DNA of 63,797 bases, the filler included, from Cercozoa sp. M6MM (lineage: Eukaryota > Protista > Endomyxa: Ascetosporea): assembly GCA_040357565.1 (NCBI GenBank). It is 9 parts of 9 records of this genome, joined end to end, with 100 filler letters (N's around TTAATTAATTAA, not from the genome) between each part and the next. Parts side by side here need not be neighbours in the genome. Positions count along the whole stretch, not along the records: positions 37,859 to 56,277 come from JBDODJ010000235.1; 8 more parts are not named here. The stretch is one strand, 5' to 3'. Position 1 is the stretch's first letter, and each line of letters begins with the position of its first letter. The position numbers and the translations under genes were made by a program. Shown here piece by piece: positions 37,859-56,277 of this stretch. The notes below the pieces were generated by a model. It saw nothing but the letters and a program-made list of their open reading frames with translations, was not told the DNA's origin and ran no database searches.

Positions 37859-37917
<59 letters not shown>

Positions 37918-37923
37918 AAGTAC

Positions 37924-38704
37924 CAGGCAACGTGGACGAACATCTCGCCACGGCACGTACTCGGAACACAGACTGCGGTTCGTAGACAACATCGAGACGT
38001 TGCTCCAGCGAGGGACCGGCCTGTTTTAACAAACCAGTGACAACAGCAACGTGCTCTTTTTGACTCAAAATACGTCATCTTCGTCGAGGTAAACGCCGCG
38101 TTTCTCAGCGTCTTCCACCGCCTTCTTCTTCAGCTGCACGGACCATCAGCACACACGCCAAGAAACATTCACTTGAGTCAACGGGGTCAAATGAAGCTTA
38201 CAACATCGATCGCAAGTCGCACCGACGTCGCGATTTCGCCTTCTTCCTGCGGAATAAAGTGAGGCATTAAACGCCCCACAGGGCAAATGGTAGGCCACTT
38301 ACCAGGTAGAAACGCAGAGGCGCCTCCATGTCGAACGAGTCATCCTCCGGCTTGGACCGCAGTTCCTCTTTTTTCAAAGTGCGCACCAGGGTCACCAACT
38401 GCGCACAGTCACATCCGCGCGGACATTAACAAACACAAATCCTGTCACACATGCATATCAATACCTGCTCAGGCTTGACATCGATGGGCACTGACACGGC
38501 GTCACCGAGCGGCGTTCCGTCGCGCGAGCGCAGCTGAATCACCACCGAGGTCACCTGGCCGCGCTGACGTTTCTCGCCAACCGCGACAGCCTCCTGCTCA
38601 TGGTCAGAAGCAATCTCCTCGAACTCTTCCTCGCTCTCAGGGCGAACACTCGTTTTCGTGTTATTTTGCGTCTTTCGACGCTTCTGTGCCGGTTCCGCAC
38701 TCAT
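37924..38704 (-). CDS. NLE1: Notchless/Rsa4 ribosome assembly factor, N-terminal NLE domain (3' partial)
   Basis: VVIQLRSRDGTPLGDAVSVPIDVKPEQ|L, then SLEQRLDVVYEPQSVFRVRAVARCSSTLPG, the NLE1 signature before the first WD40. Confidence 0.92.
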
Positions 38705-38869: not shown

Positions 38870-39680
38870 ATGGCACCCAAGCCCGGCCAGGCGCGCAAGC
38901 GTAGACGAAAGCGCTCTTCGAAACAGAAGAACGATGTGGTGACTGAAACGAAGATTGCCGAGAACACTGTTGTTGAGACGCCGCAGGAGCCGCCGAAGAA
39001 GCGATCGCGCGGCAAGAAGTCCCGTGACGTGTCTGAGGCTGTTGAGACCCCGCAGGTGGCCGATACGACGGACAAGAGCACGGACAGCGCTGACGGTGAG
39101 GTCGTCCAGGATCAGAGGTAGCCTTTCGCGCGGTAGTGTTTTTGTGTACAGTTGAGTGTTTTTATCAACGCAGCGCCGATGCCGAAGTCGTTCAGGGCGA
39201 CGGCTCGTCCATGCCTGCGTCTGTGGTGTGTTTCTTTGCTGTCCAATGTGAGTGTGCTTTCACATGTGCGTGTGCAACGCAGGAGCTGCAGGAGCAGGAC
39301 TACCTGTTCTCGTCGCTCGGTTTGCACGAGGATACGACCACTGCTGTTGAGCGCATGGGTTTTGAAAAGGTGTGTTTCACGTACGCGCGTATGTGTATGT
39401 TTGTGCTACCCGCTTTGTTCTCAGATGACGTCGATCCAGGCGCGTGCAGTGCCGCCTGCTCTGGCGGGTCGTGACATCCTCGGTAGGCCGTACTTGTTGC
39501 TGTTCTGTGTCCGCTGTATATGTATGCAATAGGTGCTGCCAAGACTGGCAGCGGTAAGACGATGGCCTTCTTGCTGCCCATCGTTGAACTCAGTACCTCA
39601 ACCTCTGTGTCTGTGTCTGTGTCTGTGTCTGTGTCTGTGTGTGTGTGTGTGTGTGTATATCTGATCGAGACATGAGACGC

Positions 39681-39714
<34 letters not shown>

Positions 39715-42050
39715 TGCGGCGTGGCAAGTTCAAGACGCGCAACGGCACTGGCGCGATCATCATCGTCCCAACGCGCGAACTTGCTATCCAGGTGTGTTTG
39801 CTACTGTGCTTGGTTGAATCGATGTTTACGTGTGTATGCTTAAACAGGTGTACGGCGTGCTCCAGGAGTTGCTGACCAACAAGGATGGCACTGGCCATAC
39901 GCACACGCACGGTGTCATCATGGGTGGAGCTAATCGGTACGCACTTTAGCCGCTTACGTCTAGCCCTGCTGCATACTGCCTGGCTATTAATGTCGTGCCG
40001 CAGTCGTACGGAGGCGCAGCGACTGATGCGTGGTGTGAGCGTGCTCGTGGCTACCCCAGGTCGTTTGTTCGACCATCTCGAGAACACTGACGGCGTAATA
40101 GATTCATCTGCTTGCCTGTAGCACATATGTCGGTGTACGCTGGTATCGTGTAGTGGAACACTCGGTCGCTGTCGGTGTTGGCAATCGACGAAGCTGATCG
40201 CATTCTCGAAAACGGGTTCGAGGTTGCCTGGCCTGTTAACTTGAGGTTTGTTGTGTGTACACACGTGTTTTGTGATGCACAGGACGAGATGAAGAAGATC
40301 GTGAAGCTGCTGCCGCGCGACCGACAGACGTATGTCATGTTGTTCCTTTTGGTATTGAGTTAAAGGTGCGTATGTTCTGTAGCCTGCTCTTTTCGGCCAC
40401 GCAGACCAAGAAGGCGAGCGACCTGGCGCGTCTGGCCTTCCGCGAGAAGCCGGTGTGCTCTGTCCTTCTGTCTGTTTACAAAGCTGATGTGTTCTGTGTC
40501 TTTCCCTTAGGTCTACATTGGCGTCGATGACAATGCGCAAGCTGCCACGCGTCTCGGTCTCAGTCAGGTATCACGTAACCCTCCTTCTCCTTGAACCTGA
40601 TTCTTCCACTTGACTTTAGGGTTACGTGGTGTGTCCGTCCGAGCTGCGTTTCCGCCTGCTATTCTCCTTCCTGAAGCGACAGCGCAAGAAGAAAGTCATC
40701 GTGTTCATGTCGACTTGCGCGGCTGTGACCTACTTTGCGCAGTTGCTGAATTTTGTCGATCTACCCGTGCTGTCGCTGCATGGCAAGCTGGTACCCGCCC
40801 CCCCCCCCCCCCCCGTGTGCATTGAAGCCATATTACCTCCTTTATTCCCGTGTTGCAGAAGCAAAAGCGCCGCACGGCCACTTTCTTCGAGTTCTGCAAT
40901 GCCGAGCACGGCACGCTCATCACGACCGATGTTGTGTGTTTCATCTGTGTTGCCTACCTTTGTATTTTGGTACCCACCATTCGCTGACTAGGCTGCTCGT
41001 GGTCTTGACATTCCGCGCGTGGACTGGATTATCCAGTTCGACCCGCCTGAGGACCCGCGCGACTACATCCATCGCGTCGGTCGTACTGCTCGTGGACAGG
41101 GCGATGTACTACCTGACTTTTGCTGACTGTAGGGAGTGCACTGGCCATACGTGTATGTTACAGGTGTCTGGCAAGGCTCTGCTGTTCTTGCGTCCCTCCG
41201 AGCTGGCGTTCTTGAAGTACCTCAAGCAAGGTATCAACATTAAACCACGGTTGCACTTGATTTCTCTGGTATACGTATGTACAGCCAAGGTGCCGTTGAA
41301 CGAGTTCGAGTTCCCGTCCAGCAAGATTGCCAACGTGCAGGTATACTGCCTTGCGAGTGATAGGGGGTGACTAAATTAAAAGTGTGTTTGTCGACAGTCG
41401 CAACTTGAGCGTCTGGTGTCGTCGAATTTCTATCTGCAGAAGGCTGCCAAGGAGGTATTTTTACTGATGCTCCGTACTCTCTTTGGTGTCTTTGAATGTA
41501 TCCGCGTGCTTCCGTAGGCATACAGATCGTACATGCAGTCGTACTCGCAGCAGAACAAGTACAGAAGACTATTTGCGTAGCCCCTTTACATTTCTGGGTG
41601 TGCGTCTGGTGTTCTTAGGAAGGACATCTTCGACATCATGCAACTCAAACCGGTCGAGGTGGCTAAGAGGTAACCTCTCCCTGGCTCTCGCGTTTGCTAT
41701 ATGCATGTATGCTTCAGTTTCGGTTTCAATGTGCCGCCCAAGGTGCACCTCAACATTCGTTTGCGTGGCCGTAAGCGCTCCGATGTACTTTGCCTTCTCT
41801 TTCCTTCTCCGTCCACACTTGTCTTTACCGTTACATTCATATGTAGGGCCAAAGCCACGGCAAACTTGGGTTCAGCGAGAAGAATCCTTACGGCCGTACC
41901 ACTGCCTTCTTTTCTCATCAATTTTCCTGTGTGTACGGCGTGTTTGCAGGATTCGCTGCTCCGGCTGACTCGGTCAACGAGAACAACGTGATCCAGCGCG
42001 GCGATCAGGCGTGTTTGCCTGGCTCGGATCAGCGACAATTCGCGCGCTAA
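38870..42050 (+). CDS. DDX18: DEAD-box RNA helicase DDX18/Has1
   Basis: [99 protein letters not shown], and C-terminal DQRQFAR*. Confidence 0.96.
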
Positions 42051-43297: not shown

Positions 43298-44388
43298 ATG
43301 TTTAAGGTTTTCAAGCACGTGGTATGGCTTTGCTACGCGCAATCGGTTTTGTGTGTTGTCGCTGATCCGAGATTGTGTGCTGTGTTCTTTTTGTACGAGC
43401 GCAGTTCGCGAAGGGCGTGTACCAGGCGGAGAGCCAGTACGTGCCTTCAATGGGGCTGTTCTATCAGCACTCTGCGCGTATGATGTCGCTTCTTTCCTGT
43501 ACCCTGTGCATTTTGATTTGAATCTGTACGCAGAGAACATCGATGGTGAGACGGTCTCGATGGAAGAGTACCGCGGCAACGTGATCATGGTGATTAACGT
43601 AGCCTCTAAGTGAGGGTAAGCTGTGTTTAATCTCAAGTCGTCTTCCTATTTTGTGTGTGTGTAATGTCTCGGTAGATTGACTAAAGCCTCGTACAAGGCC
43701 ATGGAACGGCTGTACCAGGCTCACAAGGATAAGGGTTTCACGATTCTTGCCTTTCCTTGCAATCAAGTACGCTTGGATTTTGTGTGGATTTTGTCCCTGT
43801 TGGGTGCATATTCTTTGTGTTTGTGCTCCTAGTTCCTGAGTCAGGAACCTTGGGCTGAGGATAAGATCAAGGAGTTCGCCCGCGAGAAAATGGGCTACAC
43901 TGGCCCTATGTTCTCCAAGTACACTTCTCACTGCTGCCTTGTTTTTTTTTTAAGATTCCCATGCACGTGCAGGATTGAGATTAACGGCGAGAATACGCAT
44001 CCGATCTACCAGTACGCTCTTCTGTCAGTGCATCCTTTCTGTCACTATGCCAAAGTGAAACTACCACAGGTGGTTGAAGGAGATTTTCCCGGGCGATATC
44101 GTACTCTGCATTCTCACTTTTCCTGGCTCTGCGATGTGTTGTGTATTGAGTGCGCTTCTGTAGACCTGGAACTTTGCGAGCAAGTTCCTCATCGATCGCA
44201 ATGGCGTTCCTGTGCGTCGCTTTGACAAGAGCGAGTCCTGGGAGGTGCCTTTAATCTTGCATCTTATGCTGTTTTAATTTTCTTGGTATTATGCTGCTGT
44301 TTGATGCAACCTGCAGTCCATCGAGGAATCCATCGTGCAGTTGTGCGAAGCTGAGGTCGAGGAGACGGGCTCTGCTGCCGCCATCTAA
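43298..44388 (+). CDS. GPX: Selenocysteine-containing glutathione peroxidase (PHGPx/GPx4-like)
   Basis: GNVIMVINVASK-TGA(43611-43613)-G|LTK, GFTILAFPCNQF..QEP, MFSKIEING..HPIYQWLK and TWNFASKFLIDRNG. The TGA occupies the catalytic C/U position. TAA stop at 44386-44388. Confidence 0.95.
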
Positions 44389-44435
44389 ACAGTGCGTACG
44401 CCCTTAAATGCATCAAAGTCGAGCGAAATCGCCCC

Positions 44436-44588
44436 CACAATTTGTCTATCCGTGACGGCTGTTGCGTCAATGGTCTGCAACCCTTTGTTTTTTTATGTGT
44501 CTGTCTGTGTGTCAAGCGATCCTCATTTTGGTCTCATGCAGTCACCGACACCGCTTCAGCCCGATTTTTCTTCTGTGACGAATTTGTG
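44436..44588 (+). promoter_or_regulatory. Type II SECIS element, interrupted by a 69-nt intron (44473-44541)
   Basis: Spliced sequence is GTGAC-GGCTG-TT-GCG-TC-AA-TG|TC-ACC-GACA-C-CGC-TT-CAGCC-CGAT. It has the UGA/GA core, a 12-nt helix II arm, unpaired AA and a TGTC/GACA mini-helix. Helix I is AATTTGTC/GACGAATT. Confidence 0.85.
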
Positions 44589-44826
44589 CCCCCCGTTTTC
44601 CTCGCTTTTGGCGCGTGATTTGAAGCTGGGTTAGTTATAAATAAATAACGTCTGTTGACTACTTTATCTCGCGTCGTCTTAGTCCGGAAACTGAAACCCA
44701 GCCTCAATGGCGTGATCTAACAAGCTTGTTCTCCATCGGCAAAACGCGGGAACCCAGCCATGTTTTTCGTGGGTTTTTTGGATCGTTAGAAGTGCGCAAC
44801 GTTGTGCCGCAATATATAAAGCTCTG

Positions 44827-45713
44827 ATGAATCCATTCAAACGCTCAACAAAGCGCTTCTCTGGTGCCAAACTATTTTCGTGGTTCGTTTGTTTGTGCAT
44901 TGTTTTGCAGTTGGCGGAAAGCCGTTGCCGTCGCCAGCGCAACCATCATCACTGCAGAAGCGACCGCGCCGTGTGGTACTTTGAGCATGACGGCATGAAT
45001 GCGCAAACTTTTGCTTTGGCAGGGCCGTGTCAAGTCAAGCGGCGACCCAATACCCATGCGTATCCCGATTGAAGGTACCTTGGAAATAACAGAATACAAA
45101 GAACCCGTTTGTGGATGTCTGTGTGTTTACAGAGAAAAAACCGCCAAAAAAGAAGCGTCGCATTATCAACAATTTCGTCCCGACCACGGAGCATATGTTG
45201 TTCACGGACCGGAAGACAAATCTGCATGGCGGGAAGAAAGTGCTTGGTTCCACCACGCAAATCGACATTAGTGATGTGTATTGATTTTGTTGTGTTGTTG
45301 TTTTACCACTTTACCTTCTCCGTCTCATTTTCTAGGCCACGTGTTGCTTCGTTTGGTGCCGTGAAGAAAAGCACCAACAACCTGTCGGATCAGCAGGTGC
45401 CTGCTTCCGCTTATCTTTTTCAGAGGAACCATATTTTGTTTCGTTTTTCATTTGTGCAGAAGCATGTGCTTGAAACTGTGCTGAAACGTCGGCGGTCGGT
45501 GTTTTTCACGGGTGCTGCTGGCACCGGCAAGTCCTTCCTGTTGCGTCATCTGATCAAGTGTCTGCCTGACGTACGATTTAGTTCCTTTACCCTTTTGTCT
45601 TCATACCTTCGATCTTTTTGCAGGATGGAACCACGGCTGTTACAGCATCAACCGGACTCGCAGCGACTGCACTCAAAGGTAACTGCCAATGTTACCATTA
45701 CCGTTGCCTTCTA

Positions 45714-45770
<57 letters not shown>

Positions 45771-48157
45771 ACATACACGAACACACACAGGTACAACGCT
45801 GCACGCGTTCTGTGGTGCCGGTGCTGTTCTGGGCGACCCTCGTGCCACACCTATGGCTGTTGCACGGTACCTTTTCTGTGTGTGTAACCTTTGTGCCCGC
45901 ATTTGCCTCCTTTTGTTTGGCCAGTCGCGTGCAGTCGCAGCGCAAAGCGATCGAGCGTTGGCGACGCACGCGAGTTCTTGTTGTTGGTACCCCCCCCCCC
46001 CCGTCCCTTCTGTGGTATCTTTAATATACCTTCCGCTGCTTTAGACGAAATCTCCATGGTGTCGGCGCACCTCTTCGATCAAATAGAGTTTGTTGCGCGC
46101 AAGATTCGCGGCAACTCCCGACCGTTCGGTGGTATCTGTCTCGTGCTCTGCGGCGACTTTCTGCAGCTTCCGGTATCTTACATTCCTCAAATTACGATAA
46201 CTTATTTGTATACTTTTCATTGTGTAGCCAGTATCCAAGAACTCGACGTGCAAGTTCGCCTTTGAGGCTGCTTCATGGCGTCAGTGCATTTCGCTCGAGG
46301 TCGAGTTGACGCACGTGTTTCGACAGCAGGGCGACAAGGTGTTCGCGCGCATGGTACGCTGCACTTTAATTCCGTCTTTTTTATTCGTGTTTACATTCTT
46401 TTGTGTTCCTAGTTGAACGAGCTGAGATACGGTGTGCTCAAAGACGAGACGCTTCAATCGCTGCGCAAATGCGTCAATGCACATGCTTCCAACGCTTCTG
46501 ACAGTGCCTCGTATTGCACATTTGTTCTGCATAGTGTAAAGGGAGGAAGGCTCTGCGTATGTCCAACAGAGGCATGAGAGCGACGCGACTTCTACCGCAC
46601 CGAGCGCGTGTGCAACGCGAAAACAGCGCCGCGTTGGCGAAACTTCGAGGACAAATGGTAAGTTTCTCTGCCCTTTACGTTCCATATATACTGAGTTCTC
46701 TCCTTGACCCTTCCAGGAGACGATCCGTGCACGCGACATAACGCGACAGAGTCGTTTCTTACCCAACGGCAGCAAAGAACTGCAGCAGGCACTCGACAAG
46801 TCTACGCCTGTCGCACAGGTATAAAACACCTGGTGCAGTTGCTTGCTGGTTTTCCAGGACGCTGTTGTGTGTGTTGTCAGCAAATTCAGCTGAAGGAAGG
46901 CGCGCGCGTGATTCTGCTCAAGAATGTCGACCCTGCACTGGGCCTTGCCAACGGTTCGCGTGGAACCGTGATCAGTCTTATCGATGCTCATGTACTGCTG
47001 TATTGACGGGTTTGCTAGACTGCAGAGTACACGATATGCTACAGGCACAATCAGGACGCCGTTCTCAAACGCCGAATATGCTTCCACTTGTGCGTTTTGA
47101 CAACGGCTGTGAAAAGGTGCACTCTGTCTGCGGATATGGACGTGTGTGTGTGTATGTATGTGTGTGTGTGTGTGTATGTGTGATGGGCTCTTGAACAGGT
47201 GATTGAACGCTGCGAGTTTGAGGTTCGCGACGGCAATGGACAGATCAAGTGCGTGCGCGTCCAGGTGCCGCTTGCGCTGGCGTGGGCACTCACGATTCAC
47301 AAGTGCCAGGTACTATCCTTGTTTGGGCTCCTAGCATGCTTTGTGTGTTTGTGTACGTTATTGCGTGCAGGGTTTAACGTTGGACAGCGCCGTTGTCGAT
47401 TTGGCACCGTGTTTTGAGTACGGAATGGCCTATGTTGCCCTGTCTCGTGTCGTGTCTTTAAAGGGTACCACAATGCGCATGATCGGACACTTTTACTATG
47501 TTGTTTGTCCATTGTTTGTGTTAGGTCTGTCACTGCTGTCGTTTCGAAAAGACGTGATTCGCGCGAACCCGGCTGTTCTCAAGTTCTACCGCGACTTTCA
47601 TCTGCGACGACGTGGCAGCGTATCAATCCCTGTGCGTGTGTCGCATTTTTCATACACTTGCGCGTAGGGCAAGGTGCCAGAGCTGCTGCAATTGGCTTTG
47701 CGTAAGCACGGCATTTTTGCCGACGAAAGCAACGAAACTCAACGATCAACGGCAGCGCCGAGTATGCTTCCTTTTCACTTTGTTGCCTCGATCCATTGTT
47801 TTGCAATTATTTGGGCTTACAGTAACTCCAGTGCGACAGGAAACACCAAAGACACTGGCAGAATTCGCCTTGGCCGCGCAGCTGTACCGCCAGCAGCTGG
47901 GCAGTGATTTGAGCAAGAGCGAGAATACAAGCGGCACAAGCATCGTCAAACGGGAGAGTCCCTCCATTCCAGTCTCCCAATTTGACAGAGAAAGCAAGAG
48001 CGACATCAAGGATAGAACGCGAATTGTCACACGAAGTAGCAGCGATGTCACAGCTGCCAATTCGGCCGCCAGTTCGGCTGCAGCGCCAGTTCGAGTTGCG
48101 ACACAAAGCTCAAGCTCGCAGTTCGAGTTCGATGACGACTTCGATCTGGAATTTTGA
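44827..48157 (+). CDS. PIF1: PIF1-family 5'-3' DNA helicase
   Basis: [81 protein letters not shown] and [10 protein letters not shown]. Confidence 0.96.
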
Positions 48158-52255: not shown

Positions 52256-53709
52256 ATGGTGTCGCAGAAGCAGTTGCGTACCCAGCTGCGCCGCGAGCTC
52301 GCCAAGCCTGGGAACAACACGTGCGCGGACTGTGACTCACCTGGACCGGTGCGTTTCGAGTTTCCCTGCTTACTATCTTTTTTACACCTGTCTGTTGCCC
52401 TATGTAGACCTGGGCGAGCTGTAACCTCGGCGTGTTTCTATGCATCCGATGCGCAGGTTGTCACCGCTCACTCGGCACACACTGTTTGTTCCTTACCCTC
52501 TCTGCTCCATGTACCCCTTTTATCCCTTTGTCCTTTGCAAAAACAAAACAGTATCACGCATTCGATCGACGGAGCTGGATTCGTGGCAGCCGGAAACCGT
52601 CGCTTTCTTGTGCCGCGTGGGCAATGGTACTAGTTCTACACGCTTCTTCTACACACTTCCTTCACTAAACTTCCTCCTTTCTGTGTTCGTAGTGCGTGCG
52701 AATCGCGTGTGGGCGGCGTCGCTGCAGCCGCATGAGAAAATCAATGCTGCCACACCTGACTCGTACTGCTAGACAATATAATTCCTGTTGTATTTTTACA
52801 CATCTGTATACACTTATGATTTTTTCAGGGAAGCTCAGCGTTTTATTACTGCGAAATACGCACTGAGGTAGGTCGTATAGTGTACGTATCATAATGTACC
52901 GATGTCTTTTTATGTCTTTGTAAGCGTACGTGTCTATTGGGGGTGCAGGCGCTGGATCGGCAGCGTAGAGGAGACGCCGCGTGAGCAGCTGCAGCGCATG
53001 TCGACGCCATCGCCCACTGCGACTTCGTGTATCCTATGTTCTTCCCTACCCCTCCCCCGTTGATCTTGTTGATCCTGTTTAACCGTGTAGCCAGTGAGCC
53101 GGAGGAGAGCGTTTTCGACTTTCTCGGCACTGGTGTCACCGAGAGCACCTCTAATCAGGGTCAACAGGGACACCAGGACCAGCAGGGAAACCACAATTAC
53201 CAGGGCGAATCGGACAATGCTGTGTCGCCGTTCGACTTTTTGATGTCGTCGACGGGTCCCTCCAGTGACACCAACAGCAACAGCGTGGTCTCGGAGGACG
53301 CTTCCTCTGACCTGTTCGCCGACATGCAAACACAGACGCAGCCGCAAACGCCGATGCAGGCACAGCCAACTGCAGTACGTACCACCTACACTTGTAGCCA
53401 GGAGGTGCGTCATGGTGTGTGTGTGAGTGTGTGTGTGTGTGTGCAGGCAAGGAGTGCTGCCCCGTTGACACTGTCCGAGCGTCGTGCACTGGCACGGCAG
53501 CGGCACTGCGCTTCGCCGTGGGTGCGTCGTGAAACGCCAGTGTATCTTCTGTCCTTAACACGTGCCGCCTTTCATTGACCCTAAGTCTATGTACGTATGT
53601 TCAGGCAACAAACTGTGCCTGTTGCGCCGGTGCAATCTGCTCCTGTGTACCTTGGCCTTTCGGGTTTTTCGTGTGTGTGTGTGTATGTGTGTGTGTGTGT
53701 GTGCGTGTG

Positions 53710-53743
<34 letters not shown>

Positions 53744-53835
53744 GCACGTGTACTTATCTCTGCAGGCCAGATACTTCCCCCACCACGCATATGGAAGATC
53801 TTTTTGCCTCTCTCACTGTCTCCAACAACAACAGC

Positions 53836-56196: not shown

Positions 56197-56277
<81 letters not shown>

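Follow-up and report, generated by a model that had tools for sequence, protein, structure and literature searches.

The locus analyzed here resembles the eukaryotic type II SECIS elements (Rfam SECIS_1 and related families) in its position in the 3'-UTR of a selenocysteine (Sec)-encoding glutathione peroxidase (GPx) gene and in the succession of helix I, an internal loop, the UGA/GA quartet and helix II, as well as in the unpaired AA situated 12 nt above the core; excision of an inserted segment adds an apical mini-helix to these likenesses. It differs from these elements in that its genomic halves lie 69–81 nt apart and match no Rfam family at E ≤ 10, and from the commoner type II representatives in the core, which is GUGA and not AUGA, and in helix II, which includes a UU/UU internal loop. 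The nearest described case found is that of rodent MsrB1, where an intron arose in the 3'-UTR by intronization between the stop codon and the SECIS, the SECIS itself being excluded from it, and where the consequences of either mRNA form for Sec insertion were considered (PMC2901347). The present gene shares with MsrB1 a spliceosomal intron, here a candidate one, downstream of the selenoprotein stop codon; unlike in MsrB1, this candidate intron is located within the SECIS apex, and the compact element would be obtained only after splicing. Introns of tRNA anticodon loops depend for their removal on the tRNA splicing endonuclease instead of the spliceosome, and none of them serves as a recoding signal of an mRNA; the likeness to our locus consists in the insertion into an apical loop, the removal of which restores a compact fold, as is proposed here. 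A full-text literature search, most subscription journals being outside its coverage, returned no precedent for an intron inside a SECIS, and the SECISearch3 paper mentions none; within this incomplete coverage the search agrees with the statement of the initial annotation that no intron-interrupted SECIS had been described.

The source strain, M6MM, is an amoeba from fish gills, assigned to Apofilosa (Rhizaria; PMC11069148, PMC13746701). Cercozoa sp. M6MM, a marine amoeba, has recently been named Lemnamoeba sinaloensis; its genome is small and compact, a gene containing 13 introns on average; the introns have a mean length of 82 nt and are in 99.5% of cases of the GT/AG type, intergenic distances have a median of 162 nt, simple repeats are abundant, and the transcriptome of the strain is SRX22918777 (PMC13746701). 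The use of Sec is known in Rhizaria, Bigelowiella natans possessing 23 selenoprotein genes (PMC7539508).

Materials and Methods

The analyzed window, i.e., the whole stretch of DNA in which all coordinates are counted, comprises 63,797 nucleotides; the gene and its neighbors considered below belong to the part derived from contig JBDODJ010000235.1. SECIS elements were sought with a descriptor demanding an [AG]UGA core, an AA located 10–13 nt above the core N, a helix II in which pairing extends to at least 8 of the first 10 positions, a 3' GA, an apex between 3 and 32 nt long, and energies of the upper stem and of helix I within set limits. Two shuffle controls were used. In the first one, 20,000 dinucleotide shuffles of the region 44389–44800 (412 nt) were generated and the descriptor was run on every GT..AG excision; in the second one, the arms were kept fixed and the 81-nt insert was shuffled with its composition matched.

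The reference set of 59 introns was compiled on both strands of contig JBDODJ010000235.1 (38134–56019) without a splice-site matrix. It comprises the seven GPx introns, introns of a PIF1-family gene placed by homology to five PIF1 proteins, and introns proposed by a chain parser based on codon score and intron composition, and it rests, accordingly, on our own parser and on homology and not on RNA. Since the parser chains through non-coding sequence and mis-set two of the seven GPx donors (one of them forced by the UGA), only the 59 hand-checked introns were kept.

Glutathione Peroxidase Gene with an In-Frame UGA

Features of the gene and of the region downstream of it are collected in Table 1. 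The seven introns of the coding sequence are 54–72 nt long and contain 29–47% T and 38–48% GC. Exons 3–8 are identical to the NCBI protein MHM6MM_004641 (124 aa, Pfam PF00255), the single protein retrieved with an open frame that covers exons 4 and 5, to which the PF00255 (GSHPx) profile aligns at positions 42–108 with E 9.4e-23; the peptide of exon 2 is matched by profile positions 9–31 with E 1e-4, and the UGA follows directly after this peptide. As the two GSHPx matches flank the UGA (profile positions 31 and 42), it occupies the catalytic Cys/Sec column. Hence, the reading of the UGA at 43611 as the Sec codon of a real selenoprotein gene, made in the initial annotation, is corroborated by the profile on both sides of the codon and by its catalytic position. 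The gene is otherwise intact: its eight exons maintain an open frame, and residues on either side of the UGA are conserved.

The NCBI model MHM6MM_004641 begins at the first Met downstream of the TGA. A model that starts at the Met after the UGA is the classic truncation of an unrecognised selenoprotein, and since MHM6MM_004641 is devoid of the Sec codon region, it represents a mis-annotated selenoprotein. Altogether, the public annotation (43450–43675) lacks exons 1 and 2 and the first part of exon 3, which amounts to 45 codons, the Sec codon included. When metagenome contigs were searched for relatives with MHM6MM_004641, only distant GPx genes (at most 48% identity) were retrieved, with no SECIS match at E ≤ 0.1; being too distant and devoid of a SECIS match, they were of no use for comparison.

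Table 1. Coordinates of the GPx gene, its Sec codon, the putative SECIS and the candidate intron within it.
Feature	Coordinates	Strand	Basis or remark
Selenoprotein glutathione peroxidase gene	43450-44388	+	Spliced translation: 8 exons, 169 codons
GPx start and stop	ATG 43450, TAA 44386-44388	+	
GPx exons 1-4	43450-43477, 43534-43615, 43676-43766, 43833-43918	+	
GPx exons 5-8	43973-44011, 44070-44100, 44164-44244, 44317-44388	+	
In-frame UGA, Sec codon 36, motif NVASK-U-G	43611-43613	+	Pfam placement, translation
SECIS helix I, 5' strand CACAAUUUGUC	44436-44446	+	Pairs with 44577-44588 in every fold; duplex -13.8 kcal/mol
SECIS core, 5' side, G-UGA-C	44452-44456	+	Non-Watson-Crick quartet with 44562-44565; sequence and descriptor match
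Helix II, 5' strand GGCUG-UU-GCG, followed by UC, unpaired AA (44469-44470) and UG	44457-44472	+	
Inserted segment, candidate spliceosomal intron, GTCTGC...ATGCAG, 69 nt	44473-44541	+	
SECIS 3' arm: UCACCGACAC (mini-helix partner), then helix II 3' strand and core	44542-44565	+	
Helix II, 3' strand CGC-UU-CAGCC	44552-44561	+	
SECIS core, 3' side, C-GA-U	44562-44565	+	
SECIS helix I, 3' strand GACGAAUUUGUG	44577-44588	+	Folds
AATAAA, possible poly(A) signal some 50 nt downstream of the SECIS	44640-44645	+	Sequence match only

Putative SECIS Downstream of the Gene

A check of the sequence located both SECIS arms where the initial annotation had put them, namely the 5' arm GTGACGGCTGTTGCGTCAATG at 44452–44472 and the 3' arm TCACCGACACCGCTTCAGCCCGAT at 44542–44565, and the 69 nt between them (44473–44541) indeed start with GT and end with CAG. 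When 44472 is joined to 44542, an 11-bp helix I, a GUGA/CGAU core and a helix II (5+3 bp, the two parts being separated by a UU/UU internal loop) are obtained, with AA 12 nt past the core N and a UGUC/GACA mini-helix. The proposal that excision of 44473–44541 restores a type II SECIS with UGA/GA core, helix II, AA and mini-helix is sustained by both the descriptor and the fold.

The element lies in the 3'-UTR of a gene whose in-frame UGA occupies a known Sec position, helix I beginning 48 nt and the core 63 nt downstream of the TAA; in the mRNA, 465 nt separate the Sec UGA from the SECIS. The quartet between helices I and II is present at the level of sequence and fold (GUGA at 44452–44455 against CGAU at 44562–44565), 8 of 10 helix II positions are paired, and the unpaired AA, at 12 nt after the core N, falls within the range of 10–13 nt characteristic of such elements. 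A compact apex (about 10–30 nt) is what the genomic form lacks: its apex is 81 nt long, and it shrinks to 12 nt upon removal of 44473–44541 or to 26 nt upon removal of 44487–44541. If the AATAAA downstream serves as the poly(A) signal, which is possible judging by the motif, the whole SECIS would be enclosed in a 3'-UTR of about 270 nt.

The descriptor detected no unsplit SECIS in the region 44389–44800, and the same core surfaced once the apex limit was raised to 110 nt. Among the 75 GT..AG excisions of 40–120 nt available in this region, two restore a valid SECIS: that of 44473–44541 (69 nt), with an upper stem of −14.1 kcal/mol, and that of 44487–44541 (55 nt), with an upper stem of −14.4 kcal/mol, helix I being at −13.8 kcal/mol in both. 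The genomic sequence gave no Rfam covariance-model match in 44300–45000 at E ≤ 10, and none reached the gathering score across the whole contig piece 37859–56277, in line with the expectation expressed in the initial annotation that genome-based scanners would probably miss the element.

As to the probability of obtaining such arms by chance, a loose spliced match occurred in 79 of the 20,000 shuffles, the observed combined energy was reached by 3 of them, and both energies separately by none. In 162 other contig windows, taken on both strands, there were three loose matches and no strict one, none of these windows equalling both observed energies. The arms are non-random, well beyond what chance produces. 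Every Sec gene requires a SECIS; as nothing else credible is present in the 3' region, the arms were taken as the SECIS; that 44452–44472 and 44542–44565 constitute the SECIS of this gene we regard as highly probable.

Splice Signals of the Inserted Segment

The 59 reference introns are 48–83 nt long, with a single one of 122 nt, a median of 60 nt and a tight cluster at 50–70 nt. Their donors carry at position +3 A in 47 cases, G in 8, T in 4 and C in none, and at position +4 C in 27 cases, T in 15 and A in only 6. The local 5' splice-site consensus is thus GTAC/GTAT-like, unlike the usual GTAAGT.

Both candidate introns, of 55 and 69 nt, have GT...AG boundaries and fall within the bulk of the reference lengths. 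The inserted segment 44473–44541 contains 43% T and 43% GC. It had been described as U-rich and of typical intron size, and it is both; the U-richness, however, is common to the flanking 3'-UTR and does not discriminate. Composition was for this reason rejected as evidence for an intron as against UTR sequence.

The two ends of the segment are of different quality. The acceptor at 44541, with its pyrimidine-rich 3' end and YAG, scores 7.46 bits against a reference median of 6.57, a value reached by only 4% of AG sites. The donor at 44473 (ATG/GTCTGCAA) scores −1.56 bits, which is below all 59 reference introns (leave-one-out minimum −0.08); it departs from the local consensus (GT with purine at +3, mostly GTAC/GTAT) in that its sequence, GTCTGC, has at +3 a C, found in 0 of 59 references, and 81% of the GT sites of the contig score as well or better. 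An alternative donor at 44487 (TTT/GTTTTTTT; GTTTTT) reaches 2.76 bits, low but in range, and defines a 55-nt intron with the same acceptor. The exact donor named in the initial annotation, 44473, is accordingly doubtful, scoring below every reference intron and below 44487. In terms of the splice-signal score, the 69-nt candidate obtains 6.7 bits (4 of 59 references are lower) and the 55-nt candidate 12.1 bits (20 of 59 lower); with composition and length included, the full scores of the candidates are 15.2 and 14.4 bits, which places both among the lowest sixth of the reference introns but inside their range of 10.6–29.6 bits.

Shuffling of the insert shows how far such boundaries arise from its composition: 55% of the shuffled 81-nt inserts still hold a GT..AG excision giving a valid SECIS, and the splice-signal score of the 69-nt candidate is attained by 34% of them, that of the 55-nt candidate by 10%. 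Given that 10–34% of shuffled inserts do as well, the intron boundaries constitute weak evidence. The same control bears on the apical mini-helix, which had been put forward as existing only across the splice junction. The UGUC/GACA pairing does form across 44472/44542, but it is not significant when the composition of the insert is preserved, as 15% of the shuffled inserts match the energy of the upper stem together with at least the signal score of the 69-nt candidate; the mini-helix was therefore rejected as an independent line of evidence.

Taken together, the acceptor at 44541 and the length of the segment moderately favor an intron. On the splice signals, the 55-nt variant is at least as likely as the 69-nt one. 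The SECIS is neater in the 69-nt variant, where the UGUC/GACA mini-helix is closed by a 3-nt loop; in the 55-nt variant, there is a UGGU/ACCG mini-helix with a 14-nt loop.

Predicted Folds and Alternative Explanations

According to the thermodynamic folds, the presence of the insert does not prevent the formation of helix I, the core and helix II, the probability of the closing pair being 0.68–0.70 throughout (0.69 in the unspliced RNA). The predicted probability that the AA motif is unpaired is 0.28 in the unspliced RNA vs 0.99–1.0 in the 69- and 55-nt spliced forms. The z-score of the MFE is −2.2 in the 69-nt form, −1.8 in the unspliced one and −1.5 in the 55-nt one, a modest value in each case. 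As the basal part of the SECIS is predicted to form without splicing, retention of the insert may not abolish its function.

Considering these data along with the splice signals, we find it probable that an intron is removed from within the SECIS, and that its removal is constitutive. The SECIS itself appears real and interrupted and the intron probable, and the interpretation given in the initial annotation is in this sense partly supported.

The alternative that survives best, itself rather unlikely in our estimate, is that the insert is retained and is not an intron, the SECIS working with an unusually large structured apex, which may have grown by expansion of TG/TGTC repeats. Such a reading would accommodate the equally good helix I, core and helix II in the unspliced RNA (closing pair 0.69 vs 0.70 spliced), the bad donor at 44473, and the 10–34% of shuffled inserts which yield equally good excisions; besides, a UGGU/ACCG mini-helix beside the AA is possible without splicing (d55 and d45 folds). 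A T7 run and TG-rich repeats occur in the insert, and simple repeats are plentiful in the genome as a whole (PMC13746701). Against retention stand the lack of Rfam matches to the genomic form, even with the threshold relaxed to E ≤ 10, the prediction of a largely paired AA in the unspliced RNA, and the acceptor at 44541, which is among the top 4% of AGs. Moreover, a SECIS whose apex measures about 80 nt is not known to us.

The initial annotation went further and supposed that the splicing is regulated, for instance by selenium supply, so that retention or removal of the insert would set the UGA at 43611 as Sec or stop. The sole basis of this supposition consists in the split architecture and the predicted masking of the AA in the unspliced RNA. 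No feature of the sequence favors regulated over constitutive removal, seven introns of similar size have to be removed from the coding sequence anyway, and the basal SECIS still forms unspliced; unspliced mRNAs, moreover, are usually retained in the nucleus or degraded. We therefore hold regulated splicing of this kind to be a speculation and highly improbable. Similarly improbable is a broader version, according to which the compact SECIS exists only after splicing and the cell makes use of this, the masking of the AA upon retention and/or an exon-junction complex (EJC) on the core (44452) coupling the splicing history to the choice between Sec and termination or decay.

The least probable explanation, which can be given very little credence, is that the arms are not a working SECIS and that either another element serves the gene or the gene is decaying, with the UGA terminating translation: the main arms are far beyond chance, the gene has its eight exons, its open frame and the conserved residues around the UGA, and the only other loose descriptor match, at 44575–44623, with a GUGAC core at 44575, its 3' GA at 44622 and pairing at 8 of 10 positions of helix II, carries CC in place of AA, includes four G.U pairs, has an upper stem of only −6.6 kcal/mol, overlaps helix I of the main element, gives no Rfam match and is probably due to chance.

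Proposed Mechanism and Implications

Returning to the constitutive intron within the SECIS, we propose the following course of events. The genome encodes the basal half of the element intact, from helix I and the UGA/GA kink-turn core up to helix II and the unpaired AA, and the 81-nt apex would contain a short U2-type intron ending at 44541 and starting at either 44487 or 44473. This intron would be removed constitutively along with the seven introns of the coding sequence; the splicing itself, the choice of donor and the constitutive removal are all inferred here. The mature mRNA would then carry an ordinary compact SECIS 63 nt after the stop codon, which would recruit the SBP2/eEFSec machinery, the UGA at 43611–43613 being read as Sec.

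A point against the intron is the exon junction that it would create in the 3'-UTR, 84 nt past the stop codon, because a junction so placed marks the mRNA for decay in organisms with EJC-dependent NMD. The usual site of the EJC is 20–24 nt upstream of a junction. With the junction at 44472/44542, the EJC site would coincide with the 5' strand of the kink-turn core, at 44449–44456.

Should the splicing be confirmed, this would be the first SECIS, within the literature covered by our search, described with an interruption by a spliceosomal intron. In that case, genes of this kind in intron-dense protists would escape pipelines that seek a genomic SECIS downstream of a UGA, and since genomic scans would fail to detect split elements, the sizes of selenoproteomes in such lineages may be underestimated. 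The locus would also offer a natural system for studying the tolerance of the SECIS to apical insertion, as well as a 3'-UTR junction 84 nt past the stop codon alongside mRNA surveillance. Were the insert to remain in the mRNA, the element would still be unusual, since a SECIS would then function with an apex measuring about 80 nt.

Neighboring Genes and Repeats

Downstream of the GPx gene, a PIF1-family helicase gene occupies 45000–47930 on the plus strand and consists, according to our own parse, of many short exons with about 17 introns. Several of the introns in this region are in frame and stop-free, which results in a 311-aa ORF composed of a mix of exons, introns and an HTHT repeat. In the protein search with this 311-aa frame, the matches fell mostly on the HTHT low-complexity stretch, and five PIF1 homologues were usable for exon placement. 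Upstream of the GPx gene, at 39100–41950 on the plus strand, the parser alone delineated a putative DEAD-box helicase-like gene, in which about 22 introns, each 48–122 nt long, would be packed into 2.8 kb.

Long (TG)n/(CA)n repeats are located at 37859–37930, 45700–45790, 53640–53760 and 56200–56277, both ends of the contig being among these sites. Their presence at the contig ends agrees with what has been published on the strain, namely that its short-read assembly was broken by repeats.
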